From the NCBI GenBank assembly GCA_946965045.2, contig OX337241.1, positions 3,122,671 to 3,186,670 on the forward strand: DNA of 64,000 bases, in the 5' to 3' direction. The position numbers and the translations under genes were made by a program. The notes beneath the pieces are model-generated. The model made no database searches and was not told the DNA's origin. It worked only from the letters and a program-made list of their open reading frames with translations. This DNA comes from Epithemia pelagica (lineage: Eukaryota; Protista; Bacillariophyta). Positions 5,655 to 64,000 of the stretch are shown here, piece after piece. Each line of letters begins with the position of its first letter. Within the stretch, counting starts at the first letter, position 1.

Positions 5655-5701
5655 AATCTATGTGCGACTGAATGCCATTCATCGTACGCAGGACAGGCAC
5701 A
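5655..5701 (+). promoter_or_regulatory. Class II conserved upstream block of kelch genes (AATCTATGTGCGAYTGA...TCGTACGCAGGACAGGCACA)
   Basis: Found about 90-170 bp upstream of K2, K3 (about 14270), K6 (about 24510) and K10 (about 44656); partly duplicated before K2 (about 5712). It is absent before class I genes. Confidence 0.4.
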
Positions 5702-5792
5702 CCTTTCCTGTAATCTATGTGCGATTGACTGCCCGTGGAAGCTCTCGCTGCGAAAGCTTTCCCATTCCACGCGTTGCTCAATTGCCGTGACC

Positions 5793-6980: not shown

Positions 6981-7098
6981 GCATAGCCATTTAGTTCTCG
7001 AGTGGTTGACTCATTTTCTACATTCAATTGCAATCCTATTAGGACCTACAAAGTGTTTTCTCAAAAGTAGAAAGAACATGTTGCAAGATAGGGGGTAC

Positions 7099-7544
7099 TG
7101 TTGTTTTTCACTACTGTCGAGTAACGAAAAAGAGCTCTTTTGCAAAATTGTGTGTTTCTAGATTATCGTGTGCAAGCTATGAATCGCTCCTGCTCATGCG
7201 TTGAGCGTTGACTCGTAGATTGGTGCGTTGATCGACCAAATTGGCGGTCCCAATTGTTTATGGACGACCTTGCTGAGATTCATGGCTCCCTAAGTGGCGT
7301 CCGCTTACTTAGGAGCCAGTACCGTTATTACTCTGGCCATGGGAGTCGTTGTTTAGAGCGGCATGAGTGTTACATAGCCGTCGTCCAAATCCCATGTTGA
7401 GATGCGTCGTTTGTCTTTGTTGATTTGTGATTTGTGCGAGGCGGCGGTTCAATGATGCGTTGGGCGTGTTGTGTCATGGGAATTCTGTCTCTGTCCCCAT
7501 TGTCCCCCACGTGTAGTTATGCCCTTGCGTACAGTATTTGAACA
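7099..7544 (-). repeat. 3' LTR of Copia-1
   Basis: Same sequence as 12920-13365; preceded on the minus strand by the PPT GTGAGGGAG (plus strand 7545-7553). Confidence 0.96.
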
Positions 7545-7580
7545 CTCCCTCACAGAGCGGTATTGTCAGGACTACCAGGA

Positions 7581-41217: not shown

Positions 41218-42456
41218 ATGACCATGACACTGAAAGAACAAGCATGGCAATCAGGCCTTGTCCTACCCCACGAGACAGCGCAATGGAATGAAACCGATTG
41301 GCCTCCTCTTGAGGGTGGATGGCGTTATCGTCATGCCACGGTTGTACTTGATCATCCCCATACGGACAACGGCATCAACAACAAGAGACAAACGGTCGTA
41401 GTGTTGGGTGGATACCAAACACGTCAAGGCGAGCTTGAATCCATTCTTCTATTGAACTTAGCTGACCCAAACAAGCAGTGGCGAGAAGGACCACCCATGA
41501 ACAAGAAACGTGATGCACATGCCGCTGTAACGTGCAGTGGCGGCGTATACGTAATGGGAGGAGACACTGGAGCACCTTTGGATTGTATCGAACAAATTGA
41601 TGCCAATTATTTGCTGGAATCATCTTTGACAACCAGCATCACACACGAGATGAACTGGACGACATTGACATGTCGGTTATCAACGCCACGATGGGGATGT
41701 GGTGCTGTCGCGGTTCACAACCGATACATCGTTGTAATGGGTGGCTACAATAATCGTTATTTGTCGTCGGTGGATATTATTGATACCAGGAACCACACTG
41801 TCACTGCAGGACCAAGCATGAACATTCCTCGACAATTTTGTTCCAGTGCGGTCATTGGACACCGCATCTATGTCCTTGGAGGCGAAGAAGAGCATGACCA
41901 TAATCTTGACTCGGTGGAGTATTTGGACAATGCAACACCCCGTGACAATCATGAGACAAAGGAGCAGACTGGCTCGACATTCATTTCTTTCTCGTCCAGT
42001 TGGATCACTACTTCTGATTTGGTGCCTTCCAATGCACGAATTTCTTGTGCAATGGTTGCCGTGGGATCTTGTCTGGTGGTGGCGGGAGGATGGAGCAATT
42101 TAACCGTGGAAGTCTTGGATACGCACCGCAACCGCGTGTGGAATCTCCCGCCATTCACTAATAACCGCCATGGTTGCACTATGGTGACTGTTGCCAATCA
42201 TGTTGCCGTGATTGGTGGATGGGACAATCCTACCTGTGCGACATTACCACTTCTGGATAGAATTTCGTGGTGTTTTCGTCGACTCTGTAAGCAGCCTCGG
42301 AACGAATGGTATTATTGTCTAGAAAGATCGGGTAACGGAGATGTCAATGTAACATCCAGGACCATTTCGACATCCGCTCTTAAACGATTGAGGACCAATA
42401 GGATGGCACTTGAAATGTGCAACAAGTTGAACGGCCATGAGCTTGGCACGATATAA
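41218..42456 (+). CDS. Kelch-repeat protein K9
   Basis: MTMTLKEQAWQS start; six kelch motifs; tail shared with K1 (ERSGNGDVNVTSRTISTS.LKRLRTN). Confidence 0.92.
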   Translation: MTMTLKEQAWQSGLVLPHETAQWNETDWPPLEGGWRYRHATVVLDHPHTDNGINNKRQTVVVLGGYQTRQGELESILLLNLADPNKQWREGPPMNKKRDAHAAVTCSGGVYVMGGDTGAPLDCIEQIDANYLLESSLTTSITHEMNWTTLTCRLSTPRWGCGAVAVHNRYIVVMGGYNNRYLSSVDIIDTRNHTVTAGPSMNIPRQFCSSAVIGHRIYVLGGEEEHDHNLDSVEYLDNATPRDNHETKEQTGSTFISFSSSWITTSDLVPSNARISCAMVAVGSCLVVAGGWSNLTVEVLDTHRNRVWNLPPFTNNRHGCTMVTVANHVAVIGGWDNPTCATLPLLDRISWCFRRLCKQPRNEWYYCLERSGNGDVNVTSRTISTSALKRLRTNRMALEMCNKLNGHELGTI

Positions 42457-43148
42457 TGGTCATTATACTCTCGTACAAAACAGGAGATCGTGTCCATCCT
42501 AAGTTACGTTGTGAATCATAAAAGTTAATGAAAAGCTCTAAATCACTATAACCATACACGAGTGGCTTGCTCTGTCGAAAAAGACATTACTCTAGACTGC
42601 TTTCAAAGAGCAACTCCTAGTATGGTTTGAAGGCACTCACCTTGTATAGAAGATGACCGCACATGAATTTCCTTCTGAAGTCATGGCGTTTGTGGCAGTC
42701 GGATCCATGCACCACCATGGTCAGTTATCCGTGTCGTAGATAATGAGATGTTACAGCGTCCGCCATGGCACTGCTGTCCTCTGCAAACCTGTGGATATCT
42801 GGCAACCACTCTTGGGTGGATGGCCATGGTTCCGTTCCCTCTCTGTACTGTTGAAAACTTTCTGGTCTTGATCAGAATGAATCTTCTTTCAATGGAAGAT
42901 CACGGTCTTTCGTGGTCTCGTTTCATCTTTTAGGCAAAGAAGGAGCGGCCTGAAGTGTGTCTCTTCAAGTGATGGCACATAAGGAACGAGAGTGTCGCTG
43001 GGACCATGACCTGATAGTTGTGGGACAGTCGCTGGGGCCATGGATTCGTAGCAATGGCTGGATCCGACAGCAGCCAACACAGTTTGTCTTCGTTTTGTTT
43101 TCGTTGCGATGGCAGCAGTGCAAAGTATACTTCCCCTGTTGTAGGCAG

Positions 43149-43263
43149 GACAGGTTTATCGTGGGTCGTCGTCGATTCCTCTTCCTTGGTGTCAATGTCT
43201 CGTTGTGAAGGAACCACCTGTTGCAGGCAAGACAGGTTTATCGTGGGTCGTCGTCGATTCCTC
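43149..43263. repeat. 33-bp direct repeat, period 82
   Basis: GACAGGTTTATCGTGGGTCGTCGTCGATTCCTC occurs at 43149 and 43231; the paralog near 4230 has one related copy. Confidence 0.75.
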
Positions 43264-44812
43264 ATTCATGGTGTCACTGTCGTTGTGGAGCAACCAATCC
43301 GTCGACGCGGTACAAATATTGGTGGTGCTACGATTCCCAAGACTATGCTTCTGGTGGACCTTGTTCCGACAAGGCAACTGTGTTTTGGAAGTCGTCATTT
43401 GATGGTGATGCATCGATCGACCTGTTGTGCAAGAGACGATTGTTCTTGTTGTTGGTGTTTGGCTGCTGTTGGTGGATCAGGGATTGTAATTTTTCACTTC
43501 TTGTCGTCATCCTTGATGAAAGAGATAGACGATTCGTATAGTTGGTGTTGTTTGGATGGATCAAGGCGATTCTTGTTGTCACTGTTGTCCACTTCTGATG
43601 GTTCTTCGTGGTGGAAATCGAGCATGGATGGTTTCTGCTTCTATACTTTGGTTTTGTTATTGGTTACACCACTCCACCACGACAATCTTTGTACCTCGAG
43701 CTAATCGGCAGAATCAGCAAGAAGCGACAACAAGCACAAGAGGGGCTATATAACAAACTCCCCGAACAAAACCTTGCCACGAGCAGGACAGGAATGTTGA
43801 TTGATTGTCAAGTCTGGCTTCTCTTATTTTTCGTGAAATCCTCATCAAGTTTGGCTCTATTTTGGCTGTAGGTCCTTTTGCCGGAACCTCTGACACATAA
43901 AACTCTTGTACGTTCTCGACCCCAGGTGGATCCAAACGACGACTCCGCTGGTCTACCTTTTGTTCCTTGAACTCTTGTGGTTTTCAATCGAGACGACAAG
44001 TTCACCCATTGGCAAATGTAGCACCGGTCCTGACTCCCACCGTCGCGAACGGAGGCCATTGAGCCAGTGCGATATGCGGCCGTCTGCACAATCATTGAAC
44101 CGCATGCGCGAGCATTGCTGACAACCAGCGCAGACGGCACGAGACGGATTTGGCTCTCCCAAAAAGACCATGATTGATGGAGTCGGTATCAATACTGACA
44201 TAGGAGACCAACCTTTGCGGTCCAACCACATCCACGTGACATTCTCGAAAGCGATCCAAAGAAGACGACTGCAGGCGTCTGCTGCTAATGCAACACGAGA
44301 AGCAAGTCAGAATGGGATGAATGACATCATTTTCCTTCTGGTCCATCATGTCGTCGGATTCTCGTCTCTGTGTGATTATACTTGTGGCCTTGCTTCTTTC
44401 ACTATACCCGATGAGTGATGCCCATTCGAATCATTGGATCAAGAAGGCAAGAAGACCACTCTCTTGCAACATCTCTCTGTTGAAGTTGTTGTCGTTGTGA
44501 ACAGACTGTATAGGACCAAGGGAAGAATTGTGTGGAAATTAGGGATTGTCAATCTGTGGACCTATTCATCATACAAAAGGACCTCTTCATCACAAATGCT
44601 GTCACTCTCTCCCTTTCGTCGTCGACCAAAAGATACTTTTTGGGGCTTGTCATGAAATCTATGTGCGATTGATTTCTCTTCACCATCGTACGCAGGACAG
44701 GCACACCTTACATCTCCACGAAAAAAAAGCAAAGCGCTTCCACGCGTTGCTCTCAAAAATACTTTCTCTCGTGCTGCCATTTCTTGTCAACGTATTAGTA
44801 AAGCGCTGTACC

Positions 44813-46042
44813 ATGACAACGTTACTGAAAGAACAAGCATGGCAGTCGGGCCTTGTCTTATCGGACGAGACAGCAGAGTGGAATCAAAATGACTGGCCTC
44901 CACTTGTGGGTGGATGGCGTGCAGGTCATACTTCGGTCGTACTTGATCACCCCGATACGGACGGCAACGACAACAACAACAACAACAAGAGACAAACCGT
45001 CGTCGTGTTGGGTGGATACCAGACAGTTCAAGGCGCGCTCGATTCCATTCTTGTATTAAACTTGGCAGAATCAACCAAGCAGTGGCGAGAAGGGCCACGC
45101 ATGAACCAGAAACGTTCTGGACATGCCACTGTTGTGTGCAACGGTGGCGTCTACGTCATGGGAGGCTACAATGGAAGCTCAGTATTTGATTGTATCGAAC
45201 GAATTGACGAAAATGATTTGCTGCTATCACCTTTAACAACAAACATCATCACAAATGCGAGTAATTGGACGACATTGACATGTCGGTTATCATCTGGACG
45301 ACATGGGTGTTGTGCTGTCGCGGTTCACAACCGATACATCGTTGTAATGGGTGGATACAGCGATCGTTATTTGTCGTCGGTGGATATTATAGATACAAAC
45401 AGCCACACTGTCATTGCCGGACCAAGCATGATTGTTCCACGACAATGGTTTGCCAGTGCGGTCATTGGTCACCGCATCTTTGTCGTTGGAGGTCATAACG
45501 ATAATGGCCATCTTGACTCGGTGGAGTATTTGGACAATGCAACACCCTGTGACAATGATGCGACAAAAAAGGAGATAGGCTCGACGTTCATATCTTTCTC
45601 GTCCGCTTGGATCACTCAGTCGGAGTTGAGGCTTTCCAATGCACAAAGTTCTTGTGCAATGGTTGCCGTTGGATCTTGTCTGGTGGTGGCTGGAGGATGG
45701 AGCAATTCAACGGTGGAAGTCTTGGATACGCACCACAACCGCGTGTGGAGTCTCCCACCATTCGGAAATGACTACAATGACTGCAGTACGGTGACTGTTG
45801 CCAATCAAGTTGCCGTGATAAGTGGCTGGGGAAGTCCTACCTGTGCGACATTACCACTACTGGACAAGCATACGTGGTGTTTTCAACGACTCTTTGACCA
45901 GCAGTTCAACATATGGTGTCTATTTCGGGAAGGAAGGAATATCCAACATGCTGATAACTCGCCTTTCCCCACCTGGACATCAGATCGTAAACGAGCAAGG
46001 CCCCACACGCACCGTGGTGATGAAGGGAAGGATGGAACTTGA
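44813..46042 (+). CDS. Kelch-repeat protein K10
   Basis: ATG 44813 (MTTLLKEQAWQS); six kelch motifs; DRKRARP tail. Confidence 0.92.
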   Translation: MTTLLKEQAWQSGLVLSDETAEWNQNDWPPLVGGWRAGHTSVVLDHPDTDGNDNNNNNKRQTVVVLGGYQTVQGALDSILVLNLAESTKQWREGPRMNQKRSGHATVVCNGGVYVMGGYNGSSVFDCIERIDENDLLLSPLTTNIITNASNWTTLTCRLSSGRHGCCAVAVHNRYIVVMGGYSDRYLSSVDIIDTNSHTVIAGPSMIVPRQWFASAVIGHRIFVVGGHNDNGHLDSVEYLDNATPCDNDATKKEIGSTFISFSSAWITQSELRLSNAQSSCAMVAVGSCLVVAGGWSNSTVEVLDTHHNRVWSLPPFGNDYNDCSTVTVANQVAVISGWGSPTCATLPLLDKHTWCFQRLFDQQFNIWCLFREGRNIQHADNSPFPTWTSDRKRARPHTHRGDEGKDGT

Positions 46043-46938
46043 AATTTGCAACGTACTGCATGTATGTCCTAACATTAGCGGAACTATATAGCATTATCAT
46101 TTTACTCTCAAACAGTAGTTGGATTGTTTTCTTCATGGCATTGCGAACTATAGAGATATCATGTACACCGTTGTACTAGTAGAAAATGAAAGTTACACCA
46201 TCCGGCATGAAACCGCAAACAGGAGTGGAGCCAGGCCTCGGGTAGATGTTCATGGTACCATGCCTCCCTGTGCTGTTGAATGGGTCGAGTTATCATGCTG
46301 TGGAAGATTATATGGCTACGTGCCCGAAACAACATGGCGCAGCGACTTATTTGGACGGTCATCTTCGTTCCGACCATGCGTTTAATTGTGTGGAGTCCGT
46401 TCCTTCTATGGCTAATGCCTGCGTAAGAGGGCAGTGCCCCGTCTTTCGATGCTCGTGGCGGTTTTGGGTGACAGGACAATTGCGAATCCTTTGGAATTTT
46501 TCACACCGACGTGTTCGATATTTCCTCCAATACAGCAACTATTCTATATCATGAGGTCGGTAATTTGCTCGCAATGGACCGAACGGCAACACGGAATCGA
46601 GTCTCGTCGTTCCCACACCACAACCTTCCGAACTACGAACGCAGCCACAAATGAAGAAGTACCTAAATTGGACGAAACTGCTGACGGCGCTATTGCCGTG
46701 GAACCGGCTGTGTTCAATTCCATCTTGGAAGTCGGAGCATTGACGGCGGCGACGACAACGACAACGAATCAGGAAACCTCCACCACCGCTATTCCCTGTC
46801 GCACTATTGCTCGTTCGAATGCTAATGCCTGGAAACAAGCTGCTCCCCATCGCAATGTCTTGCCCCTCAATGATACAAATACAACTCATAGATTAGTCTT
46901 TTTAACTCTAGACTGCCCAAGGCTTTTACGTCGCTTCC

Positions 46939-49900
46939 TCACAGACAGATCCAAAGATAGATACTGTCGCAGAAGTCGACCAGGAACACAGTAGAAAACA
47001 CGATAGAAAACACGATAAGGAAAGTAAGCCACACATAAAAGAAGGGAACCGAGAACCGGAAGGAGACACAGCTTTGGGGAGCGGACGGTTGGAAGAATCG
47101 CCTGAACCGGCGGCGCTGAGCCGCCAAAGCGCGATAAGGCCGTTGCCGGCGGGCGGCGTGGATCCGGACCAGGAAAAGGCGTTAGCGGCCGGGCGCATCC
47201 TGCAAACAAAACTCCAACGGCCGCTGAAACAAGTCTTGGACGGGACGGGGTAAACCCAGGGTACCGCGATCGTATTCCTCTTGGATGGAATGACGAAGCG
47301 CGGCCTGTTCCTGAGCCGCAGCCCGCCGAGCCTGGTGGCCGTTGCGGTGTTCTCACAGGTCCCAGGCGGTGTTCCACAGAAACTCAATCAATGCAGCAAG
47401 CCAACGACGGCCAGTATTGCGTTTTCCCAAAAACTGGTAGTAATCATTCTGACCAGCGGCCTTCGAAGGCGGCATCCCACCCAAGGAGACGCTGGGCCGC
47501 GACCACGGCCGACAAGTTCGGAACGGCGGAGTAAAGAGGCGGAGGAGGCAGACCCTGGCGCCACAAGCAGAGGGCGGCCAGCACGTATGCAGCAATAGCA
47601 GGGTGGGTAAATCGGCGGGCCAACCATGTAGCCAGGGATTGGAGGGTTTTATCCCACAGACTGGAAACCTCGGAGTGTGGGCACTTGAACACGTGGAGGG
47701 CATTCTCCATCGGAAATCCGCAGCGAGGACAAGAGGCGGAACGCCATTGACGGCGACGAACCATCTCGACACCAACGGCAGACCGGTTGGTGGTCGACTT
47801 CACAATCCAGTGTCGACGATTCAGGGGTTGAGCGACAAAGGCGCTCCGATAGGCCTCCCAATGGACCATAGTTTCGGATCCAGTACCAAATTTCTCATGA
47901 CGGTCGAGAAACTCCGTCAAGGGCGGTCCATTGACGTGACTCCGCAGAGCGGCGGTAAAGTCAGACACGATCGTCGCCTGTCCCAAGACCACTGCCGGTA
48001 CACGTCCCATGGGCAACGGGGGAATGCAATCCGGGGCGAGGAGCTCGTACACCTGGGTAGCCCGCTCATCCATGAGCACATTTCTCAATGCCCATCGATC
48101 GAGTTCCTCTCGAGACTGAGAGGAGTCCTGATGTCCCCGGACATGATGTCCCTTCCAGAGCACCGTGGGCATGGATCGAAGGATATCCAGTGTAGCCGAC
48201 ACTAAATCCCAGCTCTTGTCCTGCACCGAAGCCGGTCGGGAGGATCGTAAGACGCGGCCCAAAACGCTCAGGCTATCGGTGGCCATATGAATTATACCGC
48301 CCTTTCCATGACCAAAACGGACGAGACCGCGAACGAAAAGAGCAATATTGTAAAGGCCGTACAGCTCACTGCGAAACGAGTTGTGACTTGACGTAGGCCC
48401 AGGGACACGAACTCCAGCCGAAATCACTTCCAATTCATCAGCCGACGGAGAAAGACACCACGCGCAAGTGCCGTCCACTCCGGCCTGAGCCAAACCATCT
48501 GACACAGCTTCCAGAGTACCGGTGTGAAGAGCGTCCACCAATCGCTGAATCGAAGCCTCACTTGGGCCCACGAACCAGTGCTGGCAGGGTAGAGGCAGCC
48601 ACGCACAAGCCACCGCAACTGCTGAGGGCGGGGGCCCGGGGCGGGGGAACTCCAACGGCAACTCCAGGGAACAAAGAGACCGTCCCTCAAGGCGAATCTG
48701 TGAGGAAGGACGGAACTTGCCAGTCAGAGGCCGTGAGACATCCGCGACGTAGAGGGGGGCACTGAGGCACAGAGCTGCAAATCCGACCGTCTCACCGCGA
48801 AACTCAAAGCGATCCTGGCCACGGCACCGTGGGAGTGGATGAAAGATTTGCCAGGACGTCGGAAGGGCCGGGGAAGCGGGAAGCGACAAGACAGGACAAT
48901 AAAGCCGATCATACCGTCCTGACCACAAGGCACAACTCCGAAACGCCAAGGAGCCGTCCCAGGAACCTAACACTCGGGAGACGCGACGAAAACGTCGGTC
49001 CACTCCGAAGGTGGTAACTAAGGCGTCTTGCCATCCTTTCCAATTGAGGCTAGAGGCGGGCGGGGTACGCGGCCAGTCCCAGGAGTGTCGCCGTCCGCAC
49101 GGCCCACTGTCACCAGACCATGCCATCGCCATGATGTGTTGGTGGTCAGCCGTCACGATATCAGCCAGGGACGCCGCACGGAGGGACAATCTGCACCAAT
49201 TGAGATCAGCCAATTCATGAGGGGAACGAATGCCTGCGGCGTGAAACGTGTCCATGAGCCAACAATCACCCGCGCTAAGCAGCGGCATGTCCGTGATCTG
49301 GAGGTTTGGGATGGTGATCTGGTGGTGCCAGCAGAAGTCCCACGTAGACGTGATCCAGGTGGCTGTGGTGCACCGATGCCAAGTCGTGTACGAATGAGCA
49401 AAGGGGTGTCCGGGAAGCCCTAATTCGAGTTGCAAGGCTTGAAACGTGGCCCGTAGGAGGTAGCCTGTAATGGAGGTATCCGCAAAAAACTGAAGAATGG
49501 TTTTGACGTGCTCTATACCTTGTTCCGTGTAAAGGTTGGGAACATCCAGCCCACCTCGATCCGGGGGACCGTAGACCACCGCACGCGGCATACTGCGAAC
49601 AATATGCGAGCGACTGAGCGCCACTTGTAATAAGGGGTGCATCAAGCGGCGACATTGGTCTTCCGAGAACGTTGAAGCCGGCAGCGGGTAAGCTAGGGTT
49701 TTCAAGATACCCGTTTTGAAGGCTGTCCACACCATGTGATAGGGCAACCGTCGGGTGCGAAGGGTGTCCGTCCAGTCCGCTATCCTCTGGCGCAAATACT
49801 CGAACTCGGCAGCCATGTTGCCATCGGGGGCCGCGCGAATGCCTAATGTGCGACGAGCATGAGAGGGATCCAGTTGTTCAATCTCAACTTGTCGGCCAGA

Positions 49901-52815
49901 GGGCGACCGGACCCGTAACAGAAAGGAAGCATCTTGAGGGCGGAGCATTTCCCATCCACCATTCCGCCATCGAAAGTCCAACAGGTACCAGTGGCATTTC
50001 TGGGGAACCAAAGCTCCTCCCGAAGCGCGGAGAGAAGCCTCCCAGAACACCACACTTTGCTGCATACGGGTTGCAACCGCAGCTAACCGATCCGAATCAC
50101 ACACGCTGACGTCGGAGGGCGGAAGGTTCACGACTAGGTCCGTGTCATCGACGAAGGCGTAGCCGACGAAGATGTATTGATCTCCAGACAGAGGAAGCCG
50201 AAGAAAGATACCATAACCTCGTTGCCGCATCGAATTGAAGATCGGCGTGCTCACGACCGCCCAGATGGCGGGGCCGCCTCCATTACCCTGACCAATCCCT
50301 GGCCTCCGGCTTCAAAGAACACTGCAGAGTCCCCGTACGCCGTGCAAATATAATGACGGAGGGATTGAATAGGACGAAGTGAGGCTTCGACCAATGGGAT
50401 AGGAACGCCACACCGACGCATCGCGAGATCAGCAGCCGTATGACCGATGCGGTCATAGCATGATTTCGCGTCGTTGGAGCATAGGGCCCCTGGCTGGCGT
50501 TGCTGCCGGAACAAATCAAAGGTGAGAACTTTGTTGAGTCCTTGATAAATGGCACTATGGAATTTCCGGCTCCCGTATTGTTCCGGGGCCAAGAGCTGAT
50601 GTTGCTCGGCGTAGGCCATCATCGTGCGTCCCAGAGCTTTATTATTCTGATTGTAGTCTGCCTCGTAAAGCAGGATTGTTCTGAGCTTCGAGACCTTGGC
50701 AACGCCAGGTTTCTTTTCGAGCATTACGTTCAAGCCAGAGGTCCATCGACTAGGGACGTAACCGGTCAAAGTCGGGATGCGGGAAAGGGCCGCGTCGACC
50801 GCCCCAAGGTGCGGCGACCGAGCATGGGCAATAAAGTGCCCAAAATGAAGCCCAGAGCGGCCCGAGGCCGTGTGTTCGCGCATTTTAGCCCATCCAGAAG
50901 CGTACGCCGTGGTCCGAAAGTCCGGGACAGCAGGGGCAGTATCGAGCAGGCCAACCGGACGTCGATGCTGGGCCAGGTAGGCCTTGGCCGGTTCCGAAAC
51001 CAAGGAGGACAACTCCACCGGTATCGTCCCTTTATGTAGGAGCTCCGTCGACGCCGGCGAGCACCCAGTGGGTCCCAATATATCAATCACTCCGGTCTGG
51101 AGCAGATCGGTGCCAGAGGCTTGCCGAAACCGGCGATCGTTCTCTATAAGACATCCTTGTTCAATCGCTTCTTTAGTCGTGACTTCCATCCAGGCTCCGT
51201 TCCATTCGCCATCCTCCCAGGCGCCGTCGCCGACGGGTACCTCGATTCGATCTAAACCCCGACGAGCTGAGGTCTTGAAAATTGACTTAATCACTCGCGC
51301 CTCCCGTCGTTGCCGTTCACGGGTAGCCATAACCTTGATGGCCGACGCTTGCGATTCAAGCCCAGCATCCGCCCGAGCTTGGGCCAACCGAGCTAAATGG
51401 GTGGTCCGATCGGCGGCGGCAGATTTCCTGGCGCATTTATACGCTTCCCAAGCACTATCCCGCTGGTGTTGAAGCACCGCCACATCCAAAGGGTCGGGAA
51501 TGTCGATACCCAGTTTGGTAGCTAACCGGTGAAGATATGACCAACTAACCCGATTGCCCAGAGCTTTGTGGAGAAGCCGATCCCACAGTCGATGCGTTAG
51601 AAGAGCGCGGCTCAAGGACGGTGACCAGGGCAGATGGCCGGTGCGTAAACGCCGGCACTTGGATTCGGCCTGAACTATACCCGTCACTCGCAGGTGATCC
51701 AGATGCTCCCATTCCGTAGCAAGAGCTGGCGTCCAGAGCCCCGTGGAGGCCGCTTGTTCCAGCCGGAATGCCCGGGCTGGAATGTCATTGTCTTGATAAA
51801 AGCGGTTCAGGAAACTATTATACCGGGACACCACTCTGGGATCAGAACACTGAAGCCGACGGGCCGTACTGGGTTGACTGGCTCCCGACGACGTCCCGAG
51901 ACGAAACAGGTCTTGGACATCCAAGTCAGTCCACACCGGACGGTGATCCCCGAGTGTAGAGCCGAACGGGAGATATCCACACGACGAGCTAGGGAGCACC
52001 GAAGACAAGAAAATACCGTCAATAGGGTGTGAACCGCGTTGGTGGGTGGGTGGAGCTCGAGACCCATCATGGCGAGAGAAAACAGCATCACGCATACGGA
52101 AGGGGGCGAAGCAATTGGTGACAGGATTCGTAGGGGCCCGAAGGTCCTCGTTTGCGTCCATGCATACGACAACATGATCATCCGATTGTTGCAGTTCCTC
52201 CAGGAACACCGCTAAATCCTCCAGGAAGGCTTGAAGGGGATCCGTCAGTCGAACAGGATTCAATCCATCAAAATGGACTCTGTGTTGAGACCAGACTGAG
52301 AAGACGTCACGGGAGTTGAACACCGGCCGGTAGGCACTCACGATGACCAGGGTCTGACCCCGGACTCCGCGGAGACGAGCCCAGACCCAGCGTCCCAAAC
52401 CAGAGGGATCCGTGCCACTTGACATCACGCGACCGCAATGCGCGTCCCGGATGATCAATGCCACTCCACCAGGTTGCCGAGCCGACGGGCTAGGAAACTG
52501 CCGAAATCAAGCTGTTTTGCAGAATGTAGTCCGAAACCAAGGGCGAATAATCTGAGACAAATGAGCAGTGTCCTCGACATGCTGCCACGCAATATTAGTC
52601 TCAGATAAACATAACACATCCACATCGTTCGATAGCATAAAGGCCTGAAGGTCGTGATACTTTGGGTGATGGCCGTAGGTAGGTAATCCAGCCGAATTCA
52701 GAGCCACTATCCACAAATACCGGTCTGACGTTCGAGCGTGAAAAGGATCCCCCCAGCAGTCACCACCACAGTCGGCGGAGTTGACCGAGAACAACGCCAT
52801 CTCGCCGCTCCTCAT
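46939..52815 (-). pseudogene. LINE ORF2 (APE endonuclease, RT, RNase H, CCHC finger), disrupted
   Basis: APE: LCLSETN, QPGG, VSAYRP, MDAN, PIDGIF, GDHRPV. RT: LRTILLYEAD, EQYGSR, SNDAKSCYDRI, GQGNG, FVDDTDL. RNase H: VSDG, RSELYG, ATDS, HVRGHQD, NVLMD. Finger: CPRCGFPMENALHVFKC. Lesions: TGA 52507-52509, frameshift near 50300, frameshift near 47450, TGA 47353-47355. Confidence 0.9.
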
Positions 52816-52879
52816 TGCACTTAGCCCCTCGGTGGAACCAGCCCGAGATGAGGACTCGGCCCGGCCCGGGGCATCAGAA

Positions 52880-54739
52880 CTAATGGCCCTGCCCCGACGG
52901 GGACTGCTGGCCCGCCGGGGAAGATGCAAGAGAAGAAAGCTGAGCGCGTACTGTCGCGACTGAAGGATGATTGGGATGAGCTAATAGCACTTGTGAAACG
53001 TTTTGTAAAACTGCAGAGAGTTGAGCCAATACTTGGTCAGGGGTGGTGGAGGAAGCTAGGGAGGAGGTGGTATCGGAGAGAGCGGTGGAGGCCAAATTGG
53101 GAGCAGCCGGCCGACATGGGAACTTGCGCGAGAACTTGACTGGGACGGGGCCGAGCCCCCTGAGACAGTGGAGGCAATCGATGTCCCCTGCGGAAGCGTA
53201 GAAATGCTATCGTGGTCCGCAGCCGCGTCATGGGGACGGACTAAACTCTGGGGAGCCACGAGTTGTATCGTCGCAGAGGAAACGGCGCCCGCCTTCGAGC
53301 AATCTAATTCAGCGTCACTGGTGTCATGGACCCAAAGGCTATAGGAGTCGGCCGGTGAGTCAACCGTCAAAGTGGTAGGATTCCAGGTTGCGCCCACGGC
53401 GCGTTCAAGAGCCTCTTGGTTAAAGTGACGGTACACCACCCGTGACAACAAAATTTCCCGATCCCTATCCTCCAAGTCCGGCTCCGCCGTGGCGACCTTC
53501 CAACGAAGGTACGGCACCAACGCCAGAATCATGGTTCTCGCTTCATCTTCTCGATCAGGGTGGAAACAGAACTGTGTCGCTCCCTCTAAATGGCTGGGAT
53601 CCACTGAGTGAAATAGGCGGTAGCCAGATTGGCTTTTGATCTCCATCAGCCGATCCCGAAGCAAAAGTCCCGAGGTATCGTCGACCACGTCTAAGTCATG
53701 CAACTCCCAAGTACGCATGTTGATCATCGATTGACAAAACTGGAGCTGCCTCAACCTTAACGCCGCAACCTTATTGCGAGTGTTGATGTTCATAAGGTCA
53801 TGTAGCGGCCACACGATGCGAAGTTTAATACCCAAGGGGAATTCCGTTGCCGACCGATCGTAGATGGTTGCGAGGCGGCGCTTGGCATCGGACTTGTGCT
53901 GGCGATCCACTTCAAAGTGGAGAGCCTTAGCGAGTTGCTCTTTAGGTATCGCTTCCGATTGTCCTGTACTGATGGTTCGCCACCGGATCCCGACTTCGTA
54001 TCCTAGTTCCGCAGACAGATGCATGCGGAGAGTGGGCACATGCATCGTCTGAGTGGAATAAAGAGCCCATCCGACTATAGAAGTCGTCTCACATTGAAGC
54101 TGCCGTGTCCAAAGCCCGTGTCTTTCGGCTTGGAACCAACTGGATAGTCCTGCCATTAACTCCGAGAACGGCTTAGTGTGTCCAAACCACACTGAGGGAT
54201 AGATGAACCCTCCTGCCGCTTTAGGAACCACGCGCGGGAAGTACTTTTTGAGCACTCCGATATCGGCTGGTATGCCAGCAGGGGACGAAATGGCTCGGAG
54301 GACACGAACACCGTTGGGCCGATCCCTGTTGTCGAGCTCGGCCCACGGGTGGACCACCAACGACGCATCCACTTCCTGAATCTTGGTCATGAGGTTGGCT
54401 AACGCGCGACGCAGTTCTTCTTCCGGATTCGTAGAGGGTGGAACATTAATGCGTAATTCGTACCGTGCTGTAACGTGGCGAGCCGGGTTCAATCGTAAAG
54501 GCCGAAGATACGGATTCACCACCTGCGTGCGGGAAATACGTGCCCGTGGTTGCGAAACGGCAGCAGCGTAGGTATGTGGTGCCGCCGCGGGGGCTGGAGA
54601 AACCGTGGTCGGCGTAGCGACCGGCTGGTTGACGAAGATATGCACCAGCGGGCCGGTGGCATTATCTCGGGCAACGGTAACAGCCTCAGCCGCATCATCA
54701 GGCGCAGGTTGGGGCGGTTCGGAGCGGGATGTTGGAGTG
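52880..54739 (-). pseudogene. LINE ORF1, 3' portion
   Basis: The 53056-54645 ORF extends without stops to the Copia-2 TSD. A probable frameshift near 53110 leads into the 52880-53095 frame. Confidence 0.75.
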
Positions 54740-55497
54740 TGTTAGGATTCCCACCGAAAACTAGGTGGCGAAACCTACAACTCATCGAATGATGCTAGTA
54801 TTTCATGGCATCCGATGACATTTTCCTAAAAGTGAGAAAAGAATGTCGGCATGCTCGCGAAACTATAAATTTGGCCACGGCATGCTCGCATTGCACGCGT
54901 TATCGGCGACCGCTCGGATATTAACTATGGCCCAACACGTGCGCGCCCAAAACTATCAAGTGCGCGCCTCTACTATCCGAGTACGCGCATCCACGATTCG
55001 ACCTAACGGTCTATGTAATCAAAGCACGAATCACGATCACGCGAGACCATATCTCTGTTCCCACAAATCCAAGAATGCAAACAGCAACGCGCCCAGGACA
55101 AGACTTATACCACGACAAAGCAAGAGCTGTTGCATCCCATACATGTTATCCATCACCCTATACATTCAATATACACCAATGCCGGTCTACTCCAACCAGT
55201 GAGGACCTATCACACCAGATCCATGGCCGTATACAAGAGCCATGACTTCGGCACCATCAACCACCTTAGTTAGTAATCGTCTCACAATCATTAATATCAC
55301 CATTTTAACACTCATCTTAAGACTAACCTCTTATCAGATGACCGACTGCCCCCACCCACGGCGGACTTCGACTTGCAACTCTTCTCTGACCCGTGGAGGA
55401 TTGTTGTGTCGGTTGGTGATTCGATTGTCGGCTCAGCGAGCCTTTTACCTATCCTACCTATCTGTCTAACCCCTGTTGAATCGAGAGAAGTTTATCA
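54740..55497 (+). repeat. 5' LTR of Copia-2
   Basis: Five mismatches against the 3' LTR seen by eye (55271, 55338, 55339, 55369, 55408). Confidence 0.95.
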
Positions 55498-55511
55498 GAT
55501 TAACAGTCTCA
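55498..55511 (+). promoter_or_regulatory. PBS of Copia-2, complementary to the tRNA-Asn(GUU) anticodon arm (half-tRNA priming)
   Basis: GATTAACAGTCTCA directly follows the LTR. Its complement UGAGA-CUGUUAA-UC reads as an anticodon stem, a loop containing GUU, and the first two bases of the 3' stem. Confidence 0.6.
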
Positions 55512-55535
55512 TCGTTTATTTCCGAGAAGCTTTCG

Positions 55536-56033
55536 ATGTCTCACGACGATTCCAACTTCCGCGAGCCGACTGAGTCGACTACCGACCCCGACGTGATCCG
55601 TTCCACAACCGAGCGCGAGATCGATTTCCAGTCCGTCCAACCCGTGACTGACCTTGAGGACATCCAACGACTTCTCGACCTCTTGTACCAGTGCTCGAGA
55701 CGCCGTTTCATTGTCCAAGCCCTGTTGGGCAACCCTGTGGAACCCATCCGTATTCGATTCATCTCCTTTGAACGTCCAACCAACTACTTCCACACCATCT
55801 GGATCGTCAACTCGACGACAAATCCGCTACCTACCCCGACTACTCGTCTCGACGAGTACGTCTCCTTTGTTCACGAGATCCATCTCTGCCAGGATTTCCG
55901 TGCGACTATCTACCCTCTCTTCACTCAACACGTGAACCACTTGTTGGAAGACGACGACGTTGAAGAACTAGCCACTACAGTGACCGATTCCGCATCTCGT
56001 CTTCAGTACCGAGCCGAAAGTGACCAAGAATAA
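55536..56033 (+). CDS. Extra ORF (165 aa) upstream of gag in Copia-2, unknown function
   Basis: ATG 55536 to TAA 56033, uninterrupted, with a globular-looking core and acidic ends; no recognised domain. Confidence 0.45.
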   Translation: MSHDDSNFREPTESTTDPDVIRSTTEREIDFQSVQPVTDLEDIQRLLDLLYQCSRRRFIVQALLGNPVEPIRIRFISFERPTNYFHTIWIVNSTTNPLPTPTTRLDEYVSFVHEIHLCQDFRATIYPLFTQHVNHLLEDDDVEELATTVTDSASRLQYRAESDQE

Positions 56034-56225
56034 GTAACTTTAAGTAGTTTCTAAAACAAACCAGACACAAAACCAAGTCCCGCACATCCGGGTTCCAAGC
56101 ACATCACACATCCGGGTACCTACATGCGTGTCACATCCGGGTTCTTTTCACACCGGTTAAATAAAATTCTCGCAAGGACATCACGCTACACACTGTGATA
56201 ACAGCTGAACCATAAAAGTACTATC

Positions 56226-59200
56226 ATGGAAGCGACACCTCCCAAGACACCGTTTACTCCTCCTGAGGACAAGTCAAGTCATATAACCAACCAAGATCTC
56301 TTCGACCATATAACTAAAGGCATCTTTGGTTGTAATGATGAACGAGCCCAATCACTTCAAAAGTGGATGCGACATCATGGTTTTGAACATATCCTTCATG
56401 TCCTCGACCATGTTGCAACTGATCCCGAGGAGACACTCAAGGATCTCATGCAATACAAGGTTGGAAAACAAGTCAACGACCTACAGACAAGTACAAGATT
56501 ACAACTCAAACTAATGGCATATTGGTTACTACAACAACGGCAACTCCAACATGGAAAACTACCCCGTGCTACATTGATGAACCTCACGAGGGACCAATAT
56601 GACGATTGGAGGATCAACACCGACTTTACCAAGTCTGGTATGAACCAAGACCCATTTTCTCCTCTGAAATCACCTGCACACTCCGTATCATCCCGATCTC
56701 CCACTACATCCTCTACAACATCTCAATCCATGTAAGATCTCTCTGCTTTCAAGAAAGGAACCAAAAGAGATGCAACAGCATTTGAATCATTCAAAGACGA
56801 ACGATACTTTGATTCGTTTTGGCGTGTATTCAAATCAACTGCGAAAGCACAAGGATTGTCGAATGTTCTTGATTTCGATTACAAGGTACCCAAGGATGAC
56901 GAATGCGCAGAGTTACTTTTCCGAGAACAACAAGTCTTTGTCTATTCTGTACTTGTACGTATTATCCAAACCGACCAAGGAAGAGCATATGTTCGAGAAC
57001 ATGAACATGATGAAGATGCAAGAGCCGTCTTGAAGAAACTCCATGTTCTACACACTGAATCTGATCTAGCTAAGCGAGAAGTGTTACGCCTAACAAGCTA
57101 CATTTCGAATCTTCGACTGGGTGACTCTTGCAACTCGTCAGTTTCTCCTACATTTTCAAGAACAGCTACGACTTCTGGATAACCTTGTACCACTGTCGGA
57201 TCGTATCCATGACCATACAAGGATGACCTTCCTTATGCAAGCTGTTGAAAAGGTACCTGATTTAAGACGAGTCAAGATCTTGGATAACGTTGTCAACACA
57301 AAATCTGGAGCCAAGTCTCTCTGTTATCAATCATATTTCTGCCTGCTTCTTGATGCTGCTTTTGACCATGACCAAGCTACCCGAACTTCTGCGTCTAACC
57401 GCCGTCGTCATGTAAAGCAACATGAATTTCAGTTGGATGAACCTTTTGAACCAGTGGAGCCCCCTGACTACCAGATCAACAACACGAATATCCAATCCGA
57501 AAAGTCCCCAACTTCGTCGAAAATCAGCCTTCCAAGAGATGTATGGTTTAAACTCTCTGAAGAGGATCGGCAAATCATTGTCGACTTCAATAAATCCGTC
57601 CAAGATTCCCCGACAACTCCACGCAAGGTCCAAACACATTCTCTTGACATTGATCCTGAACCGGACCCTGATCCTGATGCCAACAACATTGGTGATACCC
57701 ATCAAGATGCACCAGAACAAGATCCATTCGATACATCCTCTGATCCGGTTACCCATTTAGTACACCAGGCTATTGCATCGACAGATATCAATCATCCAGC
57801 ATCTGACCTCAGCAACATCTTGTCAACTTCTACGACAAAGTCAAGTCCTAAAGTCAAGTTCAAGTCTTCTGCTGATCACAAGCAAAAGGTTCATATGTCA
57901 CAATATCTATTCTCCCACAAATCCACCTTTTCTGGTAATCAACTCATCAATCGAGGTGCCACTGGAGGCCTTGCAGGATCTGACATGCGCATCCTTGCCA
58001 AAACCGGACGTCATATTACCATCGTAGGTATTGACAATCATGAATTGACTGGCCTTCCAGTTGTTACCTGTGCTGCCAAGTTTGATACAAGTGATGGACC
58101 CATTATTGGTATCTTCAATGAGTATGCCCACTATGGAAAGGGTTTATCTATCCATGCCCCAGCGCAATTTGAACATTTCGGCCTATCTGTCGACGAACGA
58201 TCCGTCAAGGTTGATGGCAAACAACGCATAACTACCCTTGATGGACGTGCATTGCCCTTACGAATCAAGGATGGCCTTGCATACATTCAATCTCTGGGAA
58301 TCCCTTCTGATGACGATATGGATAAATATCCGCATATTGTGTTCACTTCACCCCATATCTGGGATCCTTCTGTACTTGACCATACCCATCCAGACCCCCA
58401 TCAAGACCCTGCACCGAACTGGACATCTGTGGAGACTGATGGTAGTATGGAAACGTACCCCTATGACCAATATGGGGAGTATACCGATCGCGTTGTATGC
58501 ACTTTGAATCTCCTCCTTGATCTCCCATATGATCATGGCCCCGATACACCTTCCTTCTTTTCCATCTATGCTGATCAAGATGGCAACGACCCCACACTTC
58601 ATGCGTCTGTCCACAAACTCTACAAGGAACAATACGACTGGAAGAAATTTCGCCCTTTCTATGGGTGGCAATCGGAAGACGTAATCGCCGATACGTTCAA
58701 GCATACAACTCGTCATGGACACATTTCCTTTGACCAGGATACCTTGAAGAAACATTTTAAGGCCCGGAATCCTATCCTTAACCTACCACGACGGCATGAA
58801 CCCGTTGCCACTGACTCCATCTTCTCCGACACCCCGGCTGTTAACCATGGTGGCAAGATTGCTCAGATTTTTGTTGGTCGTGATACTTTGGTTACTGACA
58901 TTTATGGTATCAAGTCTACCAAGCAATTCGTCAATACCCTCCAGGATAACATTCGTACACGTGGTGTCATGGAGACTTTGATCAGTGATGGTGGTTCGTC
59001 ACTTATTTCCCACAAGGTCAAAGATATTCTTTGCACCCTTCTGATTGGTGAATACCGTTCCGAGCCCTATCATCAACACCAGAACAAAGCTGAGAACCGC
59101 TACCAGACCGTTAAGCGTATGACCAATGCTATCATGAATGCCTCTGGTTGCCCTGCTTCTGCATGGTTACTTTGTTTAGAATATGTGTGTGACCTCCTCA

Positions 59201-61873
59201 ATCACACTTCCTCTCCCACCCACTCTGGCCGCACCCCTCTTGAGGCTCTTACCGGTACCCCACCCGACATTACCCATCTCCTTTTCTTTCCTTTCTGGGA
59301 TGAGGTCTACTATCGTGTCGACCCTTCTGAACCTACCTCCGGTTCTTACCCTTCGTCTCCCGACGAGAAGCTTGGCCACTGGGTTGGTTTTGCCCACCAT
59401 GTTGGTGATGCCTTTACTTGGAAGATCCTCACTGCCGACAACGTCATCATCTCCCGTTCCGCTGTCCGTCGCGTTGCCTCCACTACCCCCAACCTTCGTG
59501 TGGATATCTCTTCAGGGGAGGAGTCGCCGCATAAACCCACTGACAAGCAAGGTGACACTGTCTTTATTCGCAGCAGAAGTGAAGACCCATCCACACCTAT
59601 GCCAACAATTGACTACGACGATTTAGTTGGACGCACATTCCTTTGTGACACTGAAGAGAATGGGGAGCGCCACCGAGCACGAGTAATCAAACGAGTTGTC
59701 GACCTGGAACAAGATGCAACCAAACAAGAAGATCGACTCAAATATATCTTTCGCAAGTCTAACTCCAATGTTGATGAGATGATCTCCTACAACCAGCTCA
59801 TGGAATACATTGAAAGGGATAATCAAGCCCAAACGACAGGGGATAGTCTCTTCCGATTCAGAGACGTTATTGCACACCAAGGACCTTTGAACTCAAGCGA
59901 CCCAGACTATTGATTGGGAGACTGGGGAGACGACATACGAACCTCTATCTCTTATTGCAAATGATGACCCCATCACAGTCGCCATCTATGCCAAGAAAAA
60001 TGGTTTGCTGGATCTACCTGGATGGAAACATCTCAAGCGATACGTCAAGACAAGCAAAAGACTCATTCGAGCAGCTAAACAATCCAGGATCAAACAAGTT
60101 TGTCGCTCTATCAAGTACAAGTTTGGTTTCCAAGTACCTCGCACCTATGAAGAAGCAGTGGAACTAGACAAGCAATTTGGGAACACGAAATAGCAAGACG
60201 CAACAGAATTGGAACTCTCACAGATCCAATCGTATAACACTTTCAAGGACCATGGAAAAGCCAAGTTCATTAATGGGAAATTGGCCAATGCATCAGAAGG
60301 ATATCATAAGATAAGAGTACATCTGGTCTTTGATGTAAAGCATGACGGAAGGCACAAGGCACGACTTGTCGCAGATGGACATCTCACCAAGGAACCCGTT
60401 GAGACCATCTATTCAGGGGTTGTCTCCATTCGCAACCTTCGCATTGCCATATTTCTTGGAACCATGAACGACATGGAAATATGGGGAGCAGATATTGGGA
60501 ACGCATACCTAGAAGCATTGACAGGAGAGAAGATTTTCATCATTGCAGGACCAGAGTTCAAGGAGTTAGAAGGACATATCTTGATCATCTACAAGGCATT
60601 ATATGGTCTCAAATTCTCAGGTGCTCGCTGGCATGACAAACTGTTTGATGTCCTCATTGATATGGGATTTTCTCCAAGCAAGGCTGACCCTGATATTTGG
60701 ATGAAGAAGGCTCCTGGAGAAGACTGTTATGAATATATCGCTGTATATGTTGATGACTTAGCTATCGTTGCCATGGACCCTGAAGCTGTCTGCAAGATCT
60801 TTACAGAAAAATACAACTTCAAACTCAAAGGAGACGGACCTATCGAGTATCATTTGGGGTGTCGTTATACCAAAGATCCAGACGGTACACTTGTGTCTGA
60901 CCCACGAAGGTACATCGAGAAGATGATGGATACCTATGAAAGATTGTTCAATGAGAAACCCAAGAAAGCAAAGCCGCCAGTCATTGCTAACGATCATCCT
61001 GAACTCGATGACTCTGAGCTCTTAGATGAAGAAGGGACCCAGCATTTCCAGACTCTTATTGGACAACTGCAATGGCTAATTACCATTGGCCGTTTTGATG
61101 TCTTTCCTGCTACCATGACTCTATCAAGGTTCAGAGCTGCTCCAAGGATTGGTCATTTGAAGCGAGCCAAACGCATCTATGGATACCTCATGTCATTTCC
61201 TGATGGGTCTATCAGATTCCGCACTGGGGAGCCAGATTTATCAGCTTTACCTATCCAAGAATACGATTGGAGTCGTACCGCATACATGGACGCCAAGGAA
61301 CGTATCCCTGAGGACTGTCCAACCCCACTTGGGCGTTTTGTGACAACCATACATTATGTCGACGCAAATCTCATGCATGATATGGTTACTGGGAAAGCAG
61401 TTACAGTCATCCTGCATTTTGTAAACGGTACACCCGTGGACTGGTACAGTAAGCGACAAGCGACAGTGGAGACAGCCACGTATGGATCTGAATTTGTTGC
61501 CGCAAGGACTGCAGTTGATCAGATCACGGAGCTACGCCTTACACTCCGATACTTGGGAGTCCCTCTGCGAGAGAAGAGTTAAATGTTTGGAGATAACCGC
61601 TCTGTCGTTATCAATAGCACCGCACCACACTCAATCATCTCCAAGAGGCACCATCTCCTATCCTATCACCGAGTCCGTGAAGCTATCGCTGCAAAGTACG
61701 TCGCATTCTACTGGAAAGATGGAAAGACAAACCCAGCTGATATTCTCAGTAAACATTGGGAATTCGCCGCAGTTTGGCCCATGCTCAGATCTTTGTTATT
61801 CTGGAGAGGAAAAATCCAGGAAAGTGATGAGGGAATTGACAATCCTCATTCGACGAATTGTGGGGAGTGTTAG
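56226..61873 (+). pseudogene. Copia-2 gag-pol, disrupted
   Basis: Gag FKKGTKRD; PR LINRGATGG (catalytic D changed to N); integrase VATDSI/LISDG/KAENR; RT YVDD; RNase H YVDAN/GSEF/FGDN/ADILSK. Stops at 56733-56735, 60191-60193 and 61580-61582; frameshifts near 57130 and 59910. Confidence 0.93.
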
Positions 61874-62625
61874 GATTCCCACCGAAAACTAGGTGGCGAA
61901 ACCTACAACTCATCGAATGATGCTAGTATTTCATGGCATCCGATGACATTTTCCTAAAAGTGAGAAAAGAATGTCGGCATGCTCGCGAAACTATAAATTT
62001 GGCCACGGCATGCTCGCATTGCACGCGTTATCGGCGACCGCTCGGATATTAACTATGGCCCAACACGTGCGCGCCCAAAACTATCAAGTGCGCGCCTCTA
62101 CTATCCGAGTACGCGCATCCACGATTCGACCTAACGGTCTATGTAATCAAAGCACGAATCACGATCACGCGAGACCATATCTCTGTTCCCACAAATCCAA
62201 GAATGCAAACAGCAACGCGCCCAGGACAAGACTTATACCACGACAAAGCAAGAGCTGTTGCATCCCATACATGTTATCCATCACCCTATACATTCAATAT
62301 ACACCAATGCCGGTCTACTCCAACCAGTGAGGACCTATCACACCAGATCCATGGCCGTATACAAGAGCCATGACTTCGGCACCATCAACCACCTTAGTCA
62401 GTAATCGTCTCACAATCATTAATATCACCATTTTAACACTCATCTTAAGACTAACCTCTTATCAGTGGACCGACTGCCCCCACCCACGGCGGACTTTGAC
62501 TTGCAACTCTTCTCTGACCCGTGGAGGATTGTTGTATCGGTTGGTGATTCGATTGTCGGCTCAGCGAGCCTTTTACCTATCCTACCTATCTGTCTAACCC
62601 CTGTTGAATCGAGAGAAGTTTATCA
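61868..62625 (+). repeat. 3' LTR of Copia-2
   Basis: 758 bp, about 99.3% identical to the 5' LTR. Confidence 0.95.
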
Positions 62626-63457
62626 GAGTGTTATCCGTTCGTGGAGGGGCCGGGTGCTCTGCTGGAAGGGCCTGATTCTGCCGGGCCAAGTCCTCAATTT
62701 CCGCATTCAGAGTCGTCGTAAATCCTCGTTGGGGGGACTCCACCGATGTCTGAGCAACCTGAACTGCCCCAGGGGGAGCATCCGCTGGAGTGGGTTGTGG
62801 AACCGCATCAGGGGGACCATGGTGGTGAGGTGGATTGGCCTCGGGGGAGGCGTCGGCTACGGGAGGTACCGCCCTCGGCACCAAAACATCCACCATAGGG
62901 ACGTCCTCATCCAAGGGTTCGGCCACCGGAGAACGTGGGGCCCGGCGATTGGACTGACGATTATGTCGGCGACGAGGAGACGACGCGGGAAGATCCGACT
63001 CGTTCACATTGTTAGCACGACCGCCACGACCGCGTTGAGTGTCCAGGGGAGGTCGGCCGTTGTTACGGCCTCGTCCTCGACCAGCTGGAGCCCGTCCACG
63101 TCCTCGGCCCCGTCCGCCCGAACTCCCTCGGGAGGACGGAACGCTAGTCCAATCCGACGCCGTGTCAGAGCTAGTATTGGGCAATGTCACCTGATCCGGA
63201 GAACGGTGCGCCGTCATGGTGGTTGGGCCTCGGCCTGACGACCGAGCGGAGCGGGAAGTAAGGGACCCCGCCGAGGTGCTAGCCGCCGTCGTAGTCTCCG
63301 CTTGGGAGTCCGTCGTTGGATGATTCACTCGAGGCGTTCCAGAAACCGCTACACCATGACCGCGTCCTTGATCCGCCGACTGAAAGAACTGGGTCACTCG
63401 GGCTTGATTGCCATGGGAAGGCGTCGACGTAGCGGAAGCTGCCGCAGGAGGCCTAGA
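62626..63457 (-). pseudogene. LINE ORF1, 5' portion (low-complexity, RGG-rich)
   Basis: Joins in frame to 54734 once Copia-2 and one TSD are removed (...RTDNT-P-TSRSEPP...). The frame is open up to the telomere junction. Confidence 0.8.
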
Positions 63458-64000
63458 AGGGTTAGGGTTAGGGTTAGGGTTAGGGTTAGGGTTAGGGCTA
63501 GGGTTAGGGTTAGGGTTAGGGTTAGGGTTAGGGTTAGGGTTAGGGTTAGGGTTAGGGTTAGGGTTAGGGTTAGGGTTAGGGTTAGGGTTAGGGTTAGGGT
63601 TAGGGTTAGGGTTAGGGTTAGGGTTAGGGTTAGGGTTAGGGTTAGGGTTAGGGTTAGGGTTAGGGTTAGGGTTAGGGTTAGGGTTAGGGTTAGGGTTAGG
63701 GTTAGGGTTAGGGTTAGGGTTAGGGTTAGGGTTAGGGTTAGGGTTAGGGTTAGGGTTAGGGTTAGGGTTAGGGTTAGGGTTAGGGTTAGGGTTAGGGTTA
63801 GGGTTAGGGTTAGGGTTAGGGTTAGGGTTAGGGTTAGGGTTAGGGTTAGGGTTAGGGTTAGGGTTAGGGTTAGGGTTAGGGTTAGGGTTAGGGTTAGGGT
63901 TAGGGTTAGGGTTAGGGTTAGGGTTAGGGTTAGGGTTAGGGTTAGGGTTAGGGTTAGGGTTAGGGTTAGGGTTAGGGTTAGGGTTAGGGTTAGGGTTAGG
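63458..64000 (+). repeat. Telomeric (TTAGGG)n array, about 90 units
   Basis: Perfect TTAGGG repeats run to the window end with one CTAGGG variant at 63498-63503. The G-rich strand runs 5' to 3' toward the end. Confidence 0.99.

Follow-up and report, generated by a model that had tools for sequence, protein, structure and literature searches.

Results

The window, the 64-kb stretch of Epithemia pelagica DNA analysed here, is the last 64 kb of contig C17 in a 60.5-Mb, 23-contig assembly, and the window ends where the contig ends. Between 46874 and 63458 lies a non-LTR retrotransposon on the minus strand that encodes an APE endonuclease and a reverse transcriptase (hereafter the LINE). An earlier note on this DNA had followed it from its 3' end straight to the telomere; we find these 16.6 kb to be split by a 7.9-kb Copia element. 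The 7.9-kb 3' part (46874-54739, minus strand) holds the 3' tail (…GAGTTGTATTTGTA), an ORF2 broken into three pieces and most of ORF1, with open reading frames at 47444-50254, 50251-52464, 52507-52929 and 53056-54645. The 5' part (62626-63458, minus strand), 97.6% identical to a paralog on contig C13, carries ORF1 from codon 6 onward (…SRPPAAASATST…), and with the Copia element removed 62626-63458 joins 46874-54739 as one minus-strand non-LTR element. The LINE's 3' end sits in a kelch module, as had been reported, although at 46873/46874 and not at 46872, and we found no telomere repeats at this 3' junction. Immediately proximal to it, at 46858-46873, is a 16-bp sequence, TCTTGCCCCTCAATGA, the proximal copy of a target-site duplication (TSD); the distal copy is missing, and we too find none within the window. 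The segment from 41800 to 46873 (plus strand), which contains a kelch gene (44546-46042) and the first part of the module after it, as kelch Pfam domains indicate, is the proximal part of a segmental duplication held in common with C13.

The last non-telomeric base is 63458 (…GGAGGCCTAGAA; …GCAGGAGGCCTAGAA; …CCTAGAA), where the minus-strand LINE stops, and a 542-bp telomere tract, GGG(TTAGGG)n on the plus strand, occupies 63459 to 64000 and reaches the contig end in about 90 units with a single variant, CTAGGG, at 63498-63503. The G-rich strand runs 5' to 3' toward the contig end, which is the orientation of a natural right-hand end, the repeats are pure from the break onward and the switch from non-telomeric to telomeric sequence is abrupt; the fusion of LINE and telomere that the first reading of the sequence had noticed is present, at 63458/63459, with its repeats correctly oriented. 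The tract is comparable in size to those at other ends in the assembly (466 bp on C13, 509 bp on C1), and a telomere-pattern search of the genome, taken for the first contig only, served just to gauge such lengths. Intact copies of the LINE, on C13 and on contig ctg1252l of a second assembly, read CCTAGAA|CCACGAG at this point and continue past the breakpoint as CCACGAGAATTG…, which leaves an overlap with TTAGGG of at most 1 nt, the A. An AGGG microhomology had been suggested as the seed for a healed break, and we rejected it because the intact copies show CCACGAG after CCTAGAA.

ORF1 is indeed open into the repeats, its reading passing from a telomere-encoded NPNP to …SRPPAAAS, but this is trivial: we rejected the open frame as meaningful because the ATG and leader are gone and CCCTAA is free of stop codons in two of its three frames. 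A protein search with the reading frame that runs from the telomere into ORF1 returned one irrelevant weak match, the low-complexity NPNP stretch having probably swamped the word index.

Inserted in ORF1 of the LINE is a 7.9-kb Copia-type LTR retrotransposon (54740-62625, plus strand) with the features that define Ty1/Copia elements, namely two 758-bp LTRs with TG…CA ends (54740-55497 and 61868-62625; 5 differences, 0.66% diverged), a 5-bp TSD, GAGTG, at 54735-54739 and 62626-62630, and an RVT_2 polymerase (Pfam, E = 2.7e-23). A 930-aa ORF within the element (57121-59913) had no Pfam match at E ≤ 0.01. The corresponding site on C13 is empty, with a single GAGTG and an uninterrupted LINE, and the element is also absent from ctg1252l. 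Because the C13 paralog has this empty site, the Copia insertion is later than the segmental duplication. The element is young. In runs of the same organism, contigs that match it reach depths 30-400 times those of contigs that match the LINE, and parts of it also occur in contigs of a biofilm metagenome run; the family is thus abundant and may be active.

The paralog at the right end of C13 records the same insertion in an interstitial setting. Window positions 41389-54740 and 62626-63458 match C13:3268875-3283068 at 98% identity (98.0% over the 13.4 kb of 41389-54740), the block from about 41.8 to 54.7 kb being ~99% identical and the 3' part of the LINE 99% identical to C13:3274359-3282253. 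In 500-bp bins, identity lies between 95 and 99.8% from 41889 on, with no difference between the LINE and the 5-kb kelch flank, and drops leftward to 83% at 41389-41888 and to 50-60% further left; the left boundary of the duplication falls at ~41.4-41.9 kb, and kelch modules other than the C13 block reach 89% identity at most. The C13 LINE occupies the same nucleotide of the same kelch module and is full length. Past the window's breakpoint it continues for 109 nt of LINE (CCACGAG…), followed by TCTTGCCCCTCAATGA and then by the rest of the interrupted module, such that the 16-bp TSD stands on both sides, and a LINE-free paralogous module further along this end region provides the empty target site. 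Since flank, 3' junction and LINE all match at this level, we conclude that C13 and C17 carry one LINE insertion event that was copied between subtelomeres. Another 22 kb, in which there are at least five additional kelch modules, separate the interrupted module on C13 from the telomere of that contig; relative to this paralog, the suggestion that the kelch array on C17 had lost its distal part holds, the loss comprising the rest of the module and those 22 kb.

ORF2 of the C13 copy is intact at 1796 aa (C13:3274927-3280317, minus strand; L007:1927-7317), with an Exo_endo_phos domain at residues 51-250 and an RVT_1 domain at 702-950. ORF1 of the same copy is broken by a 13-bp deletion (window-equivalent 63360-63372) that is absent from the C17 copy. 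The C13 telomere (C13:3305232 end) sits directly on non-repetitive sequence, …CTTCGACTTGGGTTCGGG(TTAGGG)n, with TTCGGG as a variant first repeat, and the last 2.2 kb before it contain no ORF above 292 aa among those of at least 100 aa, nor does any ORF in its last 12 kb exceed 454 aa. In the 10 kb next to the C17 telomere, the Copia and LINE frames aside, none of the ORFs of at least 200 aa is of helicase size.

Full-length relatives at C5:901102-909878, C13:2376100-2385029 and C3:2188831-2197674 define the termini of the family. These three elements are 8.8-8.9 kb long, 65-70% identical in nucleotide sequence and more than 0.9 Mb from contig ends, and they are flanked by TSDs of 15, 17 and 18 bp, respectively. 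All three begin with ACTTCTCGA(C/T)GACTG and end in GAGTTGYATTTGYA without poly(A), and ORF1 of the intact relative starts at element nucleotide 93 (CACCATGG; MVNSRGSRPPAAAS…). Mapping the 5' ends of full-length copies, as the earlier note had advised, therefore gave a common terminus, ACTTCTCGA…, of which the window copy falls 109 nt short; the missing part is the whole 92-nt leader together with 17 nt at the start of ORF1 (the ATG and 14 nt). The telomere is not seated on the true 5' end of the LINE as these diverged relatives define it, contrary to what had been thought.

The family shows the characters of APE-type LINEs, with an ORF2 that contains APE endonuclease and reverse transcriptase, defined termini and TSDs of variable length, 15-18 bp in every intact copy. 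We found no terminal enrichment: apart from the insertion discussed here, hits to the family in the assembly, partial ones included, lie at least 110 kb from contig ends, and a survey of all copies for position and TSDs, also advised beforehand, found the other members interstitial with TSDs and none terminal. Neither mark of a telomere retrotransposon appeared, since copies are not concentrated at chromosome ends or in telomere repeats and the 3' end does not rest, without a TSD, on a chromosome end or telomere repeat. In public assemblies, a search with ORF2 found 631 relatives at E ≤ 0.001, none with a family name; the best-listed among them are mostly 1,100-1,950 aa long and many have RVT_1 or Exo_endo_phos domains. 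A sequence search of solved structures with ORF2 gave no match. The family thus behaves like any LINE that relies on its endonuclease, and it does not favour termini. The window copy is already dead and passive: its promoter region and ORF1 start codon are gone, and its ORF2 is broken. It is an old element that built or extended no part of the chromosome end.

A second assembly record, ENA ERZ21939226, is probably from the same sample as the 23-contig assembly and bears on the locus through two contigs. The 350-kb ctg1252l holds a third copy of the same LINE insertion, at a distance of over 120 kb from both contig ends, with a perfect 16-bp TSD, a full 5' end and both ORF1 (903 aa) and ORF2 (1795 aa) open (L017:7225-15388). 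Its high-identity block begins only at window position 44081, and its flanks are a mosaic of the subtelomeres of C6, C9, C10, C11, C13 and C17 at 86-98% identity; the contig has no counterpart among the 23 contigs of the main assembly and may come from a haplotype that was purged. Within the 3' untranslated region of the ctg1252l LINE is a 6.9-kb insertion (L017 reverse-complement 2635-9558; window-equivalent 47002-47009) that has terminal inverted repeats (CAGGGTGTGGAAG…) and an 8-bp duplication, GATAGAAA. Its 902-aa ORF weakly matches the hAT dimerisation domain, and the insertion looks from these features like a hAT-type DNA transposon; neither the C13 nor the C17 copy has it.

The last 13,472 bp of the 1.19-Mb ctg1341l, from the same record, match window 50209-63680 at 100% identity and take in the Copia element, the junction and the CTAGGG variant; the tract there is shorter, 222 bp against 542 bp. 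This contig makes a single slip of one assembler less likely but says nothing against an event confined to the sample or to a sub-clone, and because the two assemblies probably come from the same sample (100% identity over 13.5 kb) its junction does not count as independent biological support. In a comparison that masked 63452-63480 as a repeat, contigs from two runs of the same organism stop exactly at 63458, the last base common to the capped and intact forms, as expected of a fork in the assembly graph. One contig begins exactly at 62626, where the forms with and without Copia diverge, and its variants mix C13 and C17 states, as a bubble-popped graph of both copies would give.

Arrays of kelch modules, tens to hundreds of kb long, lie near many contig ends in this genome (C6, C9, C10, C11, C13, C17, C18 and C2) and match each other in mosaic blocks at 80-98% identity with differing boundaries. 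This pattern points to extensive and frequent ectopic exchange among the subtelomeric kelch arrays.

Discussion

The end of C17 is very probably a terminal break that fell 109 bases inside a LINE-bearing segmental duplicate and was capped with new telomere repeats. The locus has what is expected of a healed end: repeats that start abruptly at 63458/63459 and run with the G-strand outward for 542 bp to the terminus, intact paralogs on C13 and ctg1252l that extend past the breakpoint, and homology between breakpoint and repeat in the range of zero to a few nucleotides, here a single A that either could have contributed. Of the two histories that the earlier note had offered, these observations support in substance the second, a later break near the 5' end of the LINE that was healed de novo, while its details change: the break is placed 109 nt into the element, the overlap shrinks from AGGG to 1 nt, and the orientation of the LINE is coincidental.

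We propose the following order of events. An 8.8-kb APE-type LINE entered a subtelomeric kelch module by ordinary target-primed reverse transcription, to which the 16-bp TSD testifies. The module that carried it was then copied among subtelomeres, yielding the copies on C13, on C17 and in ERZ21939226, whose proximal boundaries differ; ectopic recombination or break-induced replication, starting from kelch homology at ~41.4-41.9 kb, may have done the copying. C17 subsequently broke, or the copying itself was aborted, 109 nt from the 5' end of the LINE, with loss of all distal DNA, and the truncation could accordingly represent either break-induced replication that failed during the duplication or a later break. 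Repeats were added directly to …CCTAGAA with no more than 1 nt of overlap, most likely by telomerase. The Copia element entered the C17 copy after the duplication, on the testimony of the empty C13 site, and may have done so before or after the truncation.

The other history on offer was retrotransposition at the terminus: reverse transcription of the LINE would have started from a broken or uncapped end, in the manner of HeT-A/TART or endonuclease-independent L1, and telomerase would have capped the product afterwards. The 5' end does face the terminus, the window lacks the distal TSD and little of the element is missing at the junction, yet the 3' junction and about 5 kb of flank (~99%) are common to an interstitial copy with the 16-bp TSD on both sides, and the interstitial, TSD-flanked copies on C13 and in ERZ21939226 refute this origin. 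The likeness to HeT-A/TART that had been drawn from the outward-facing 5' end is correct as to orientation and fails as an interpretation, since orientation alone is a one-in-two coincidence. The LINE moreover encodes an APE endonuclease and its relatives all have ordinary TSDs, its 3' junction is without telomere repeats, and the family, with copies that are interstitial and none that are terminal, shows exactly the distribution that the earlier note had itself named as fatal to capping by the LINE. We regard terminal retrotransposition as vanishingly unlikely.

The cap could also be telomeric DNA that existed already and was captured, whether by end-joining with a telomeric fragment or by a template switch onto another telomere during break-induced replication. 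Capture would suit a junction with just 1 nt of overlap at a breakpoint that has no G/T-rich seed, in a genome whose subtelomeres exchange segments heavily, but no subtelomeric sequence from another end was co-transferred and pure repeats start right at the break. Telomerase is well known to heal ends in other eukaryotes at an overlap of 0-2 nt, and we consider capture improbable. There is very little chance, finally, that the junction is an assembly artefact in which a chimeric read, or a poorly resolved repeat between the C13 and C17 copies, brought telomere repeats and internal LINE sequence together. Such an error is conceivable where two copies are ~98-99% identical and difficult to resolve, and where the junction is supported by assembled contigs, not raw reads, with 63452-63480 masked as a repeat; the 30 bases that precede the junction gave 0 matches in a metagenome scan, which is uninformative here. 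The C17 copy is, however, individually marked by a Copia element 833 bp from the junction and by the lack of the 13-bp deletion of C13, so that a long read could anchor the junction, and its tract length is normal for the genome. In addition, ctg1341l ends in the same junction with a tract of a different length, and the short-read contigs fork exactly at 63458.

As a very probable healed terminal break, the C17 end belongs with a known kind of event. De novo telomere addition at terminal deletions, or chromosome healing, is known from gross rearrangements in yeast, subtelomeric truncations in Plasmodium and terminal deletions in humans (reviewed in PMC4700185; also PMC3974649). C17 resembles these in its oriented and abrupt repeats, in an intact homolog that reveals the loss, in the minimal overlap and in the loss of distal genes. 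It shows no difference in kind from them, its particulars being a breakpoint inside the 5' leader and ORF1 start of a LINE, a subtelomere of kelch genes and a presumed role of telomerase.

MoTeRs, the telomeric retrotransposons of Magnaporthe oryzae, insert specifically into telomere repeats and drive instability, unlike the LINE family described here, which inserts interstitially with TSDs and has a 3' end without telomere repeats. Truncated MoTeR copies capped by new telomeres are reported (PMC7367193), and to that extent C17 is similar, with a non-LTR element that borders telomere repeats and a break followed by de novo telomere formation in an unstable subtelomere. Endonuclease-independent L1 insertion is reported at dysfunctional telomeres (Morrish et al. 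2007, cited in PMC4700185). The C17 LINE is like endonuclease-independent L1, HeT-A/TART/TAHRE of Drosophila, SART/TRAS of Bombyx and endonuclease-deficient Penelope-like elements only in its 5'-distal orientation and its contact with a chromosome end. It differs from all of them as a single terminal copy and not an array, as an element with an APE endonuclease whose paralogs have TSDs, and as a member of a family that is not enriched at ends and whose 3' end here lies in a kelch module.

The event adds one more case of a known process, and a specialist would not find it surprising. Our findings remove retrotransposon-based capping or extension as a reading of the C17 end. A wider proposal, which we advance as speculative and rather doubtful, is that the truncation is recent and possibly present on one homologue only, with ctg1252l as the other haplotype, and that repeated rounds of breakage, copying to ectopic sites and healing by a telomerase that needs hardly any seed are a regular route by which subtelomeric kelch and LRR-TIR arrays, under continual reshuffling, gain and lose members. 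If that were true, the turnover of these arrays would be comparable to the dynamics of subtelomeric antigen genes in parasites. The case is fully reconstructed, with the pre-break sequence known from two paralogs, the breakpoint placed to the base and the overlap limited to 1 nt, and it offers a data point on the turnover of subtelomeric gene arrays and on the seed requirements of telomerase in this alga.
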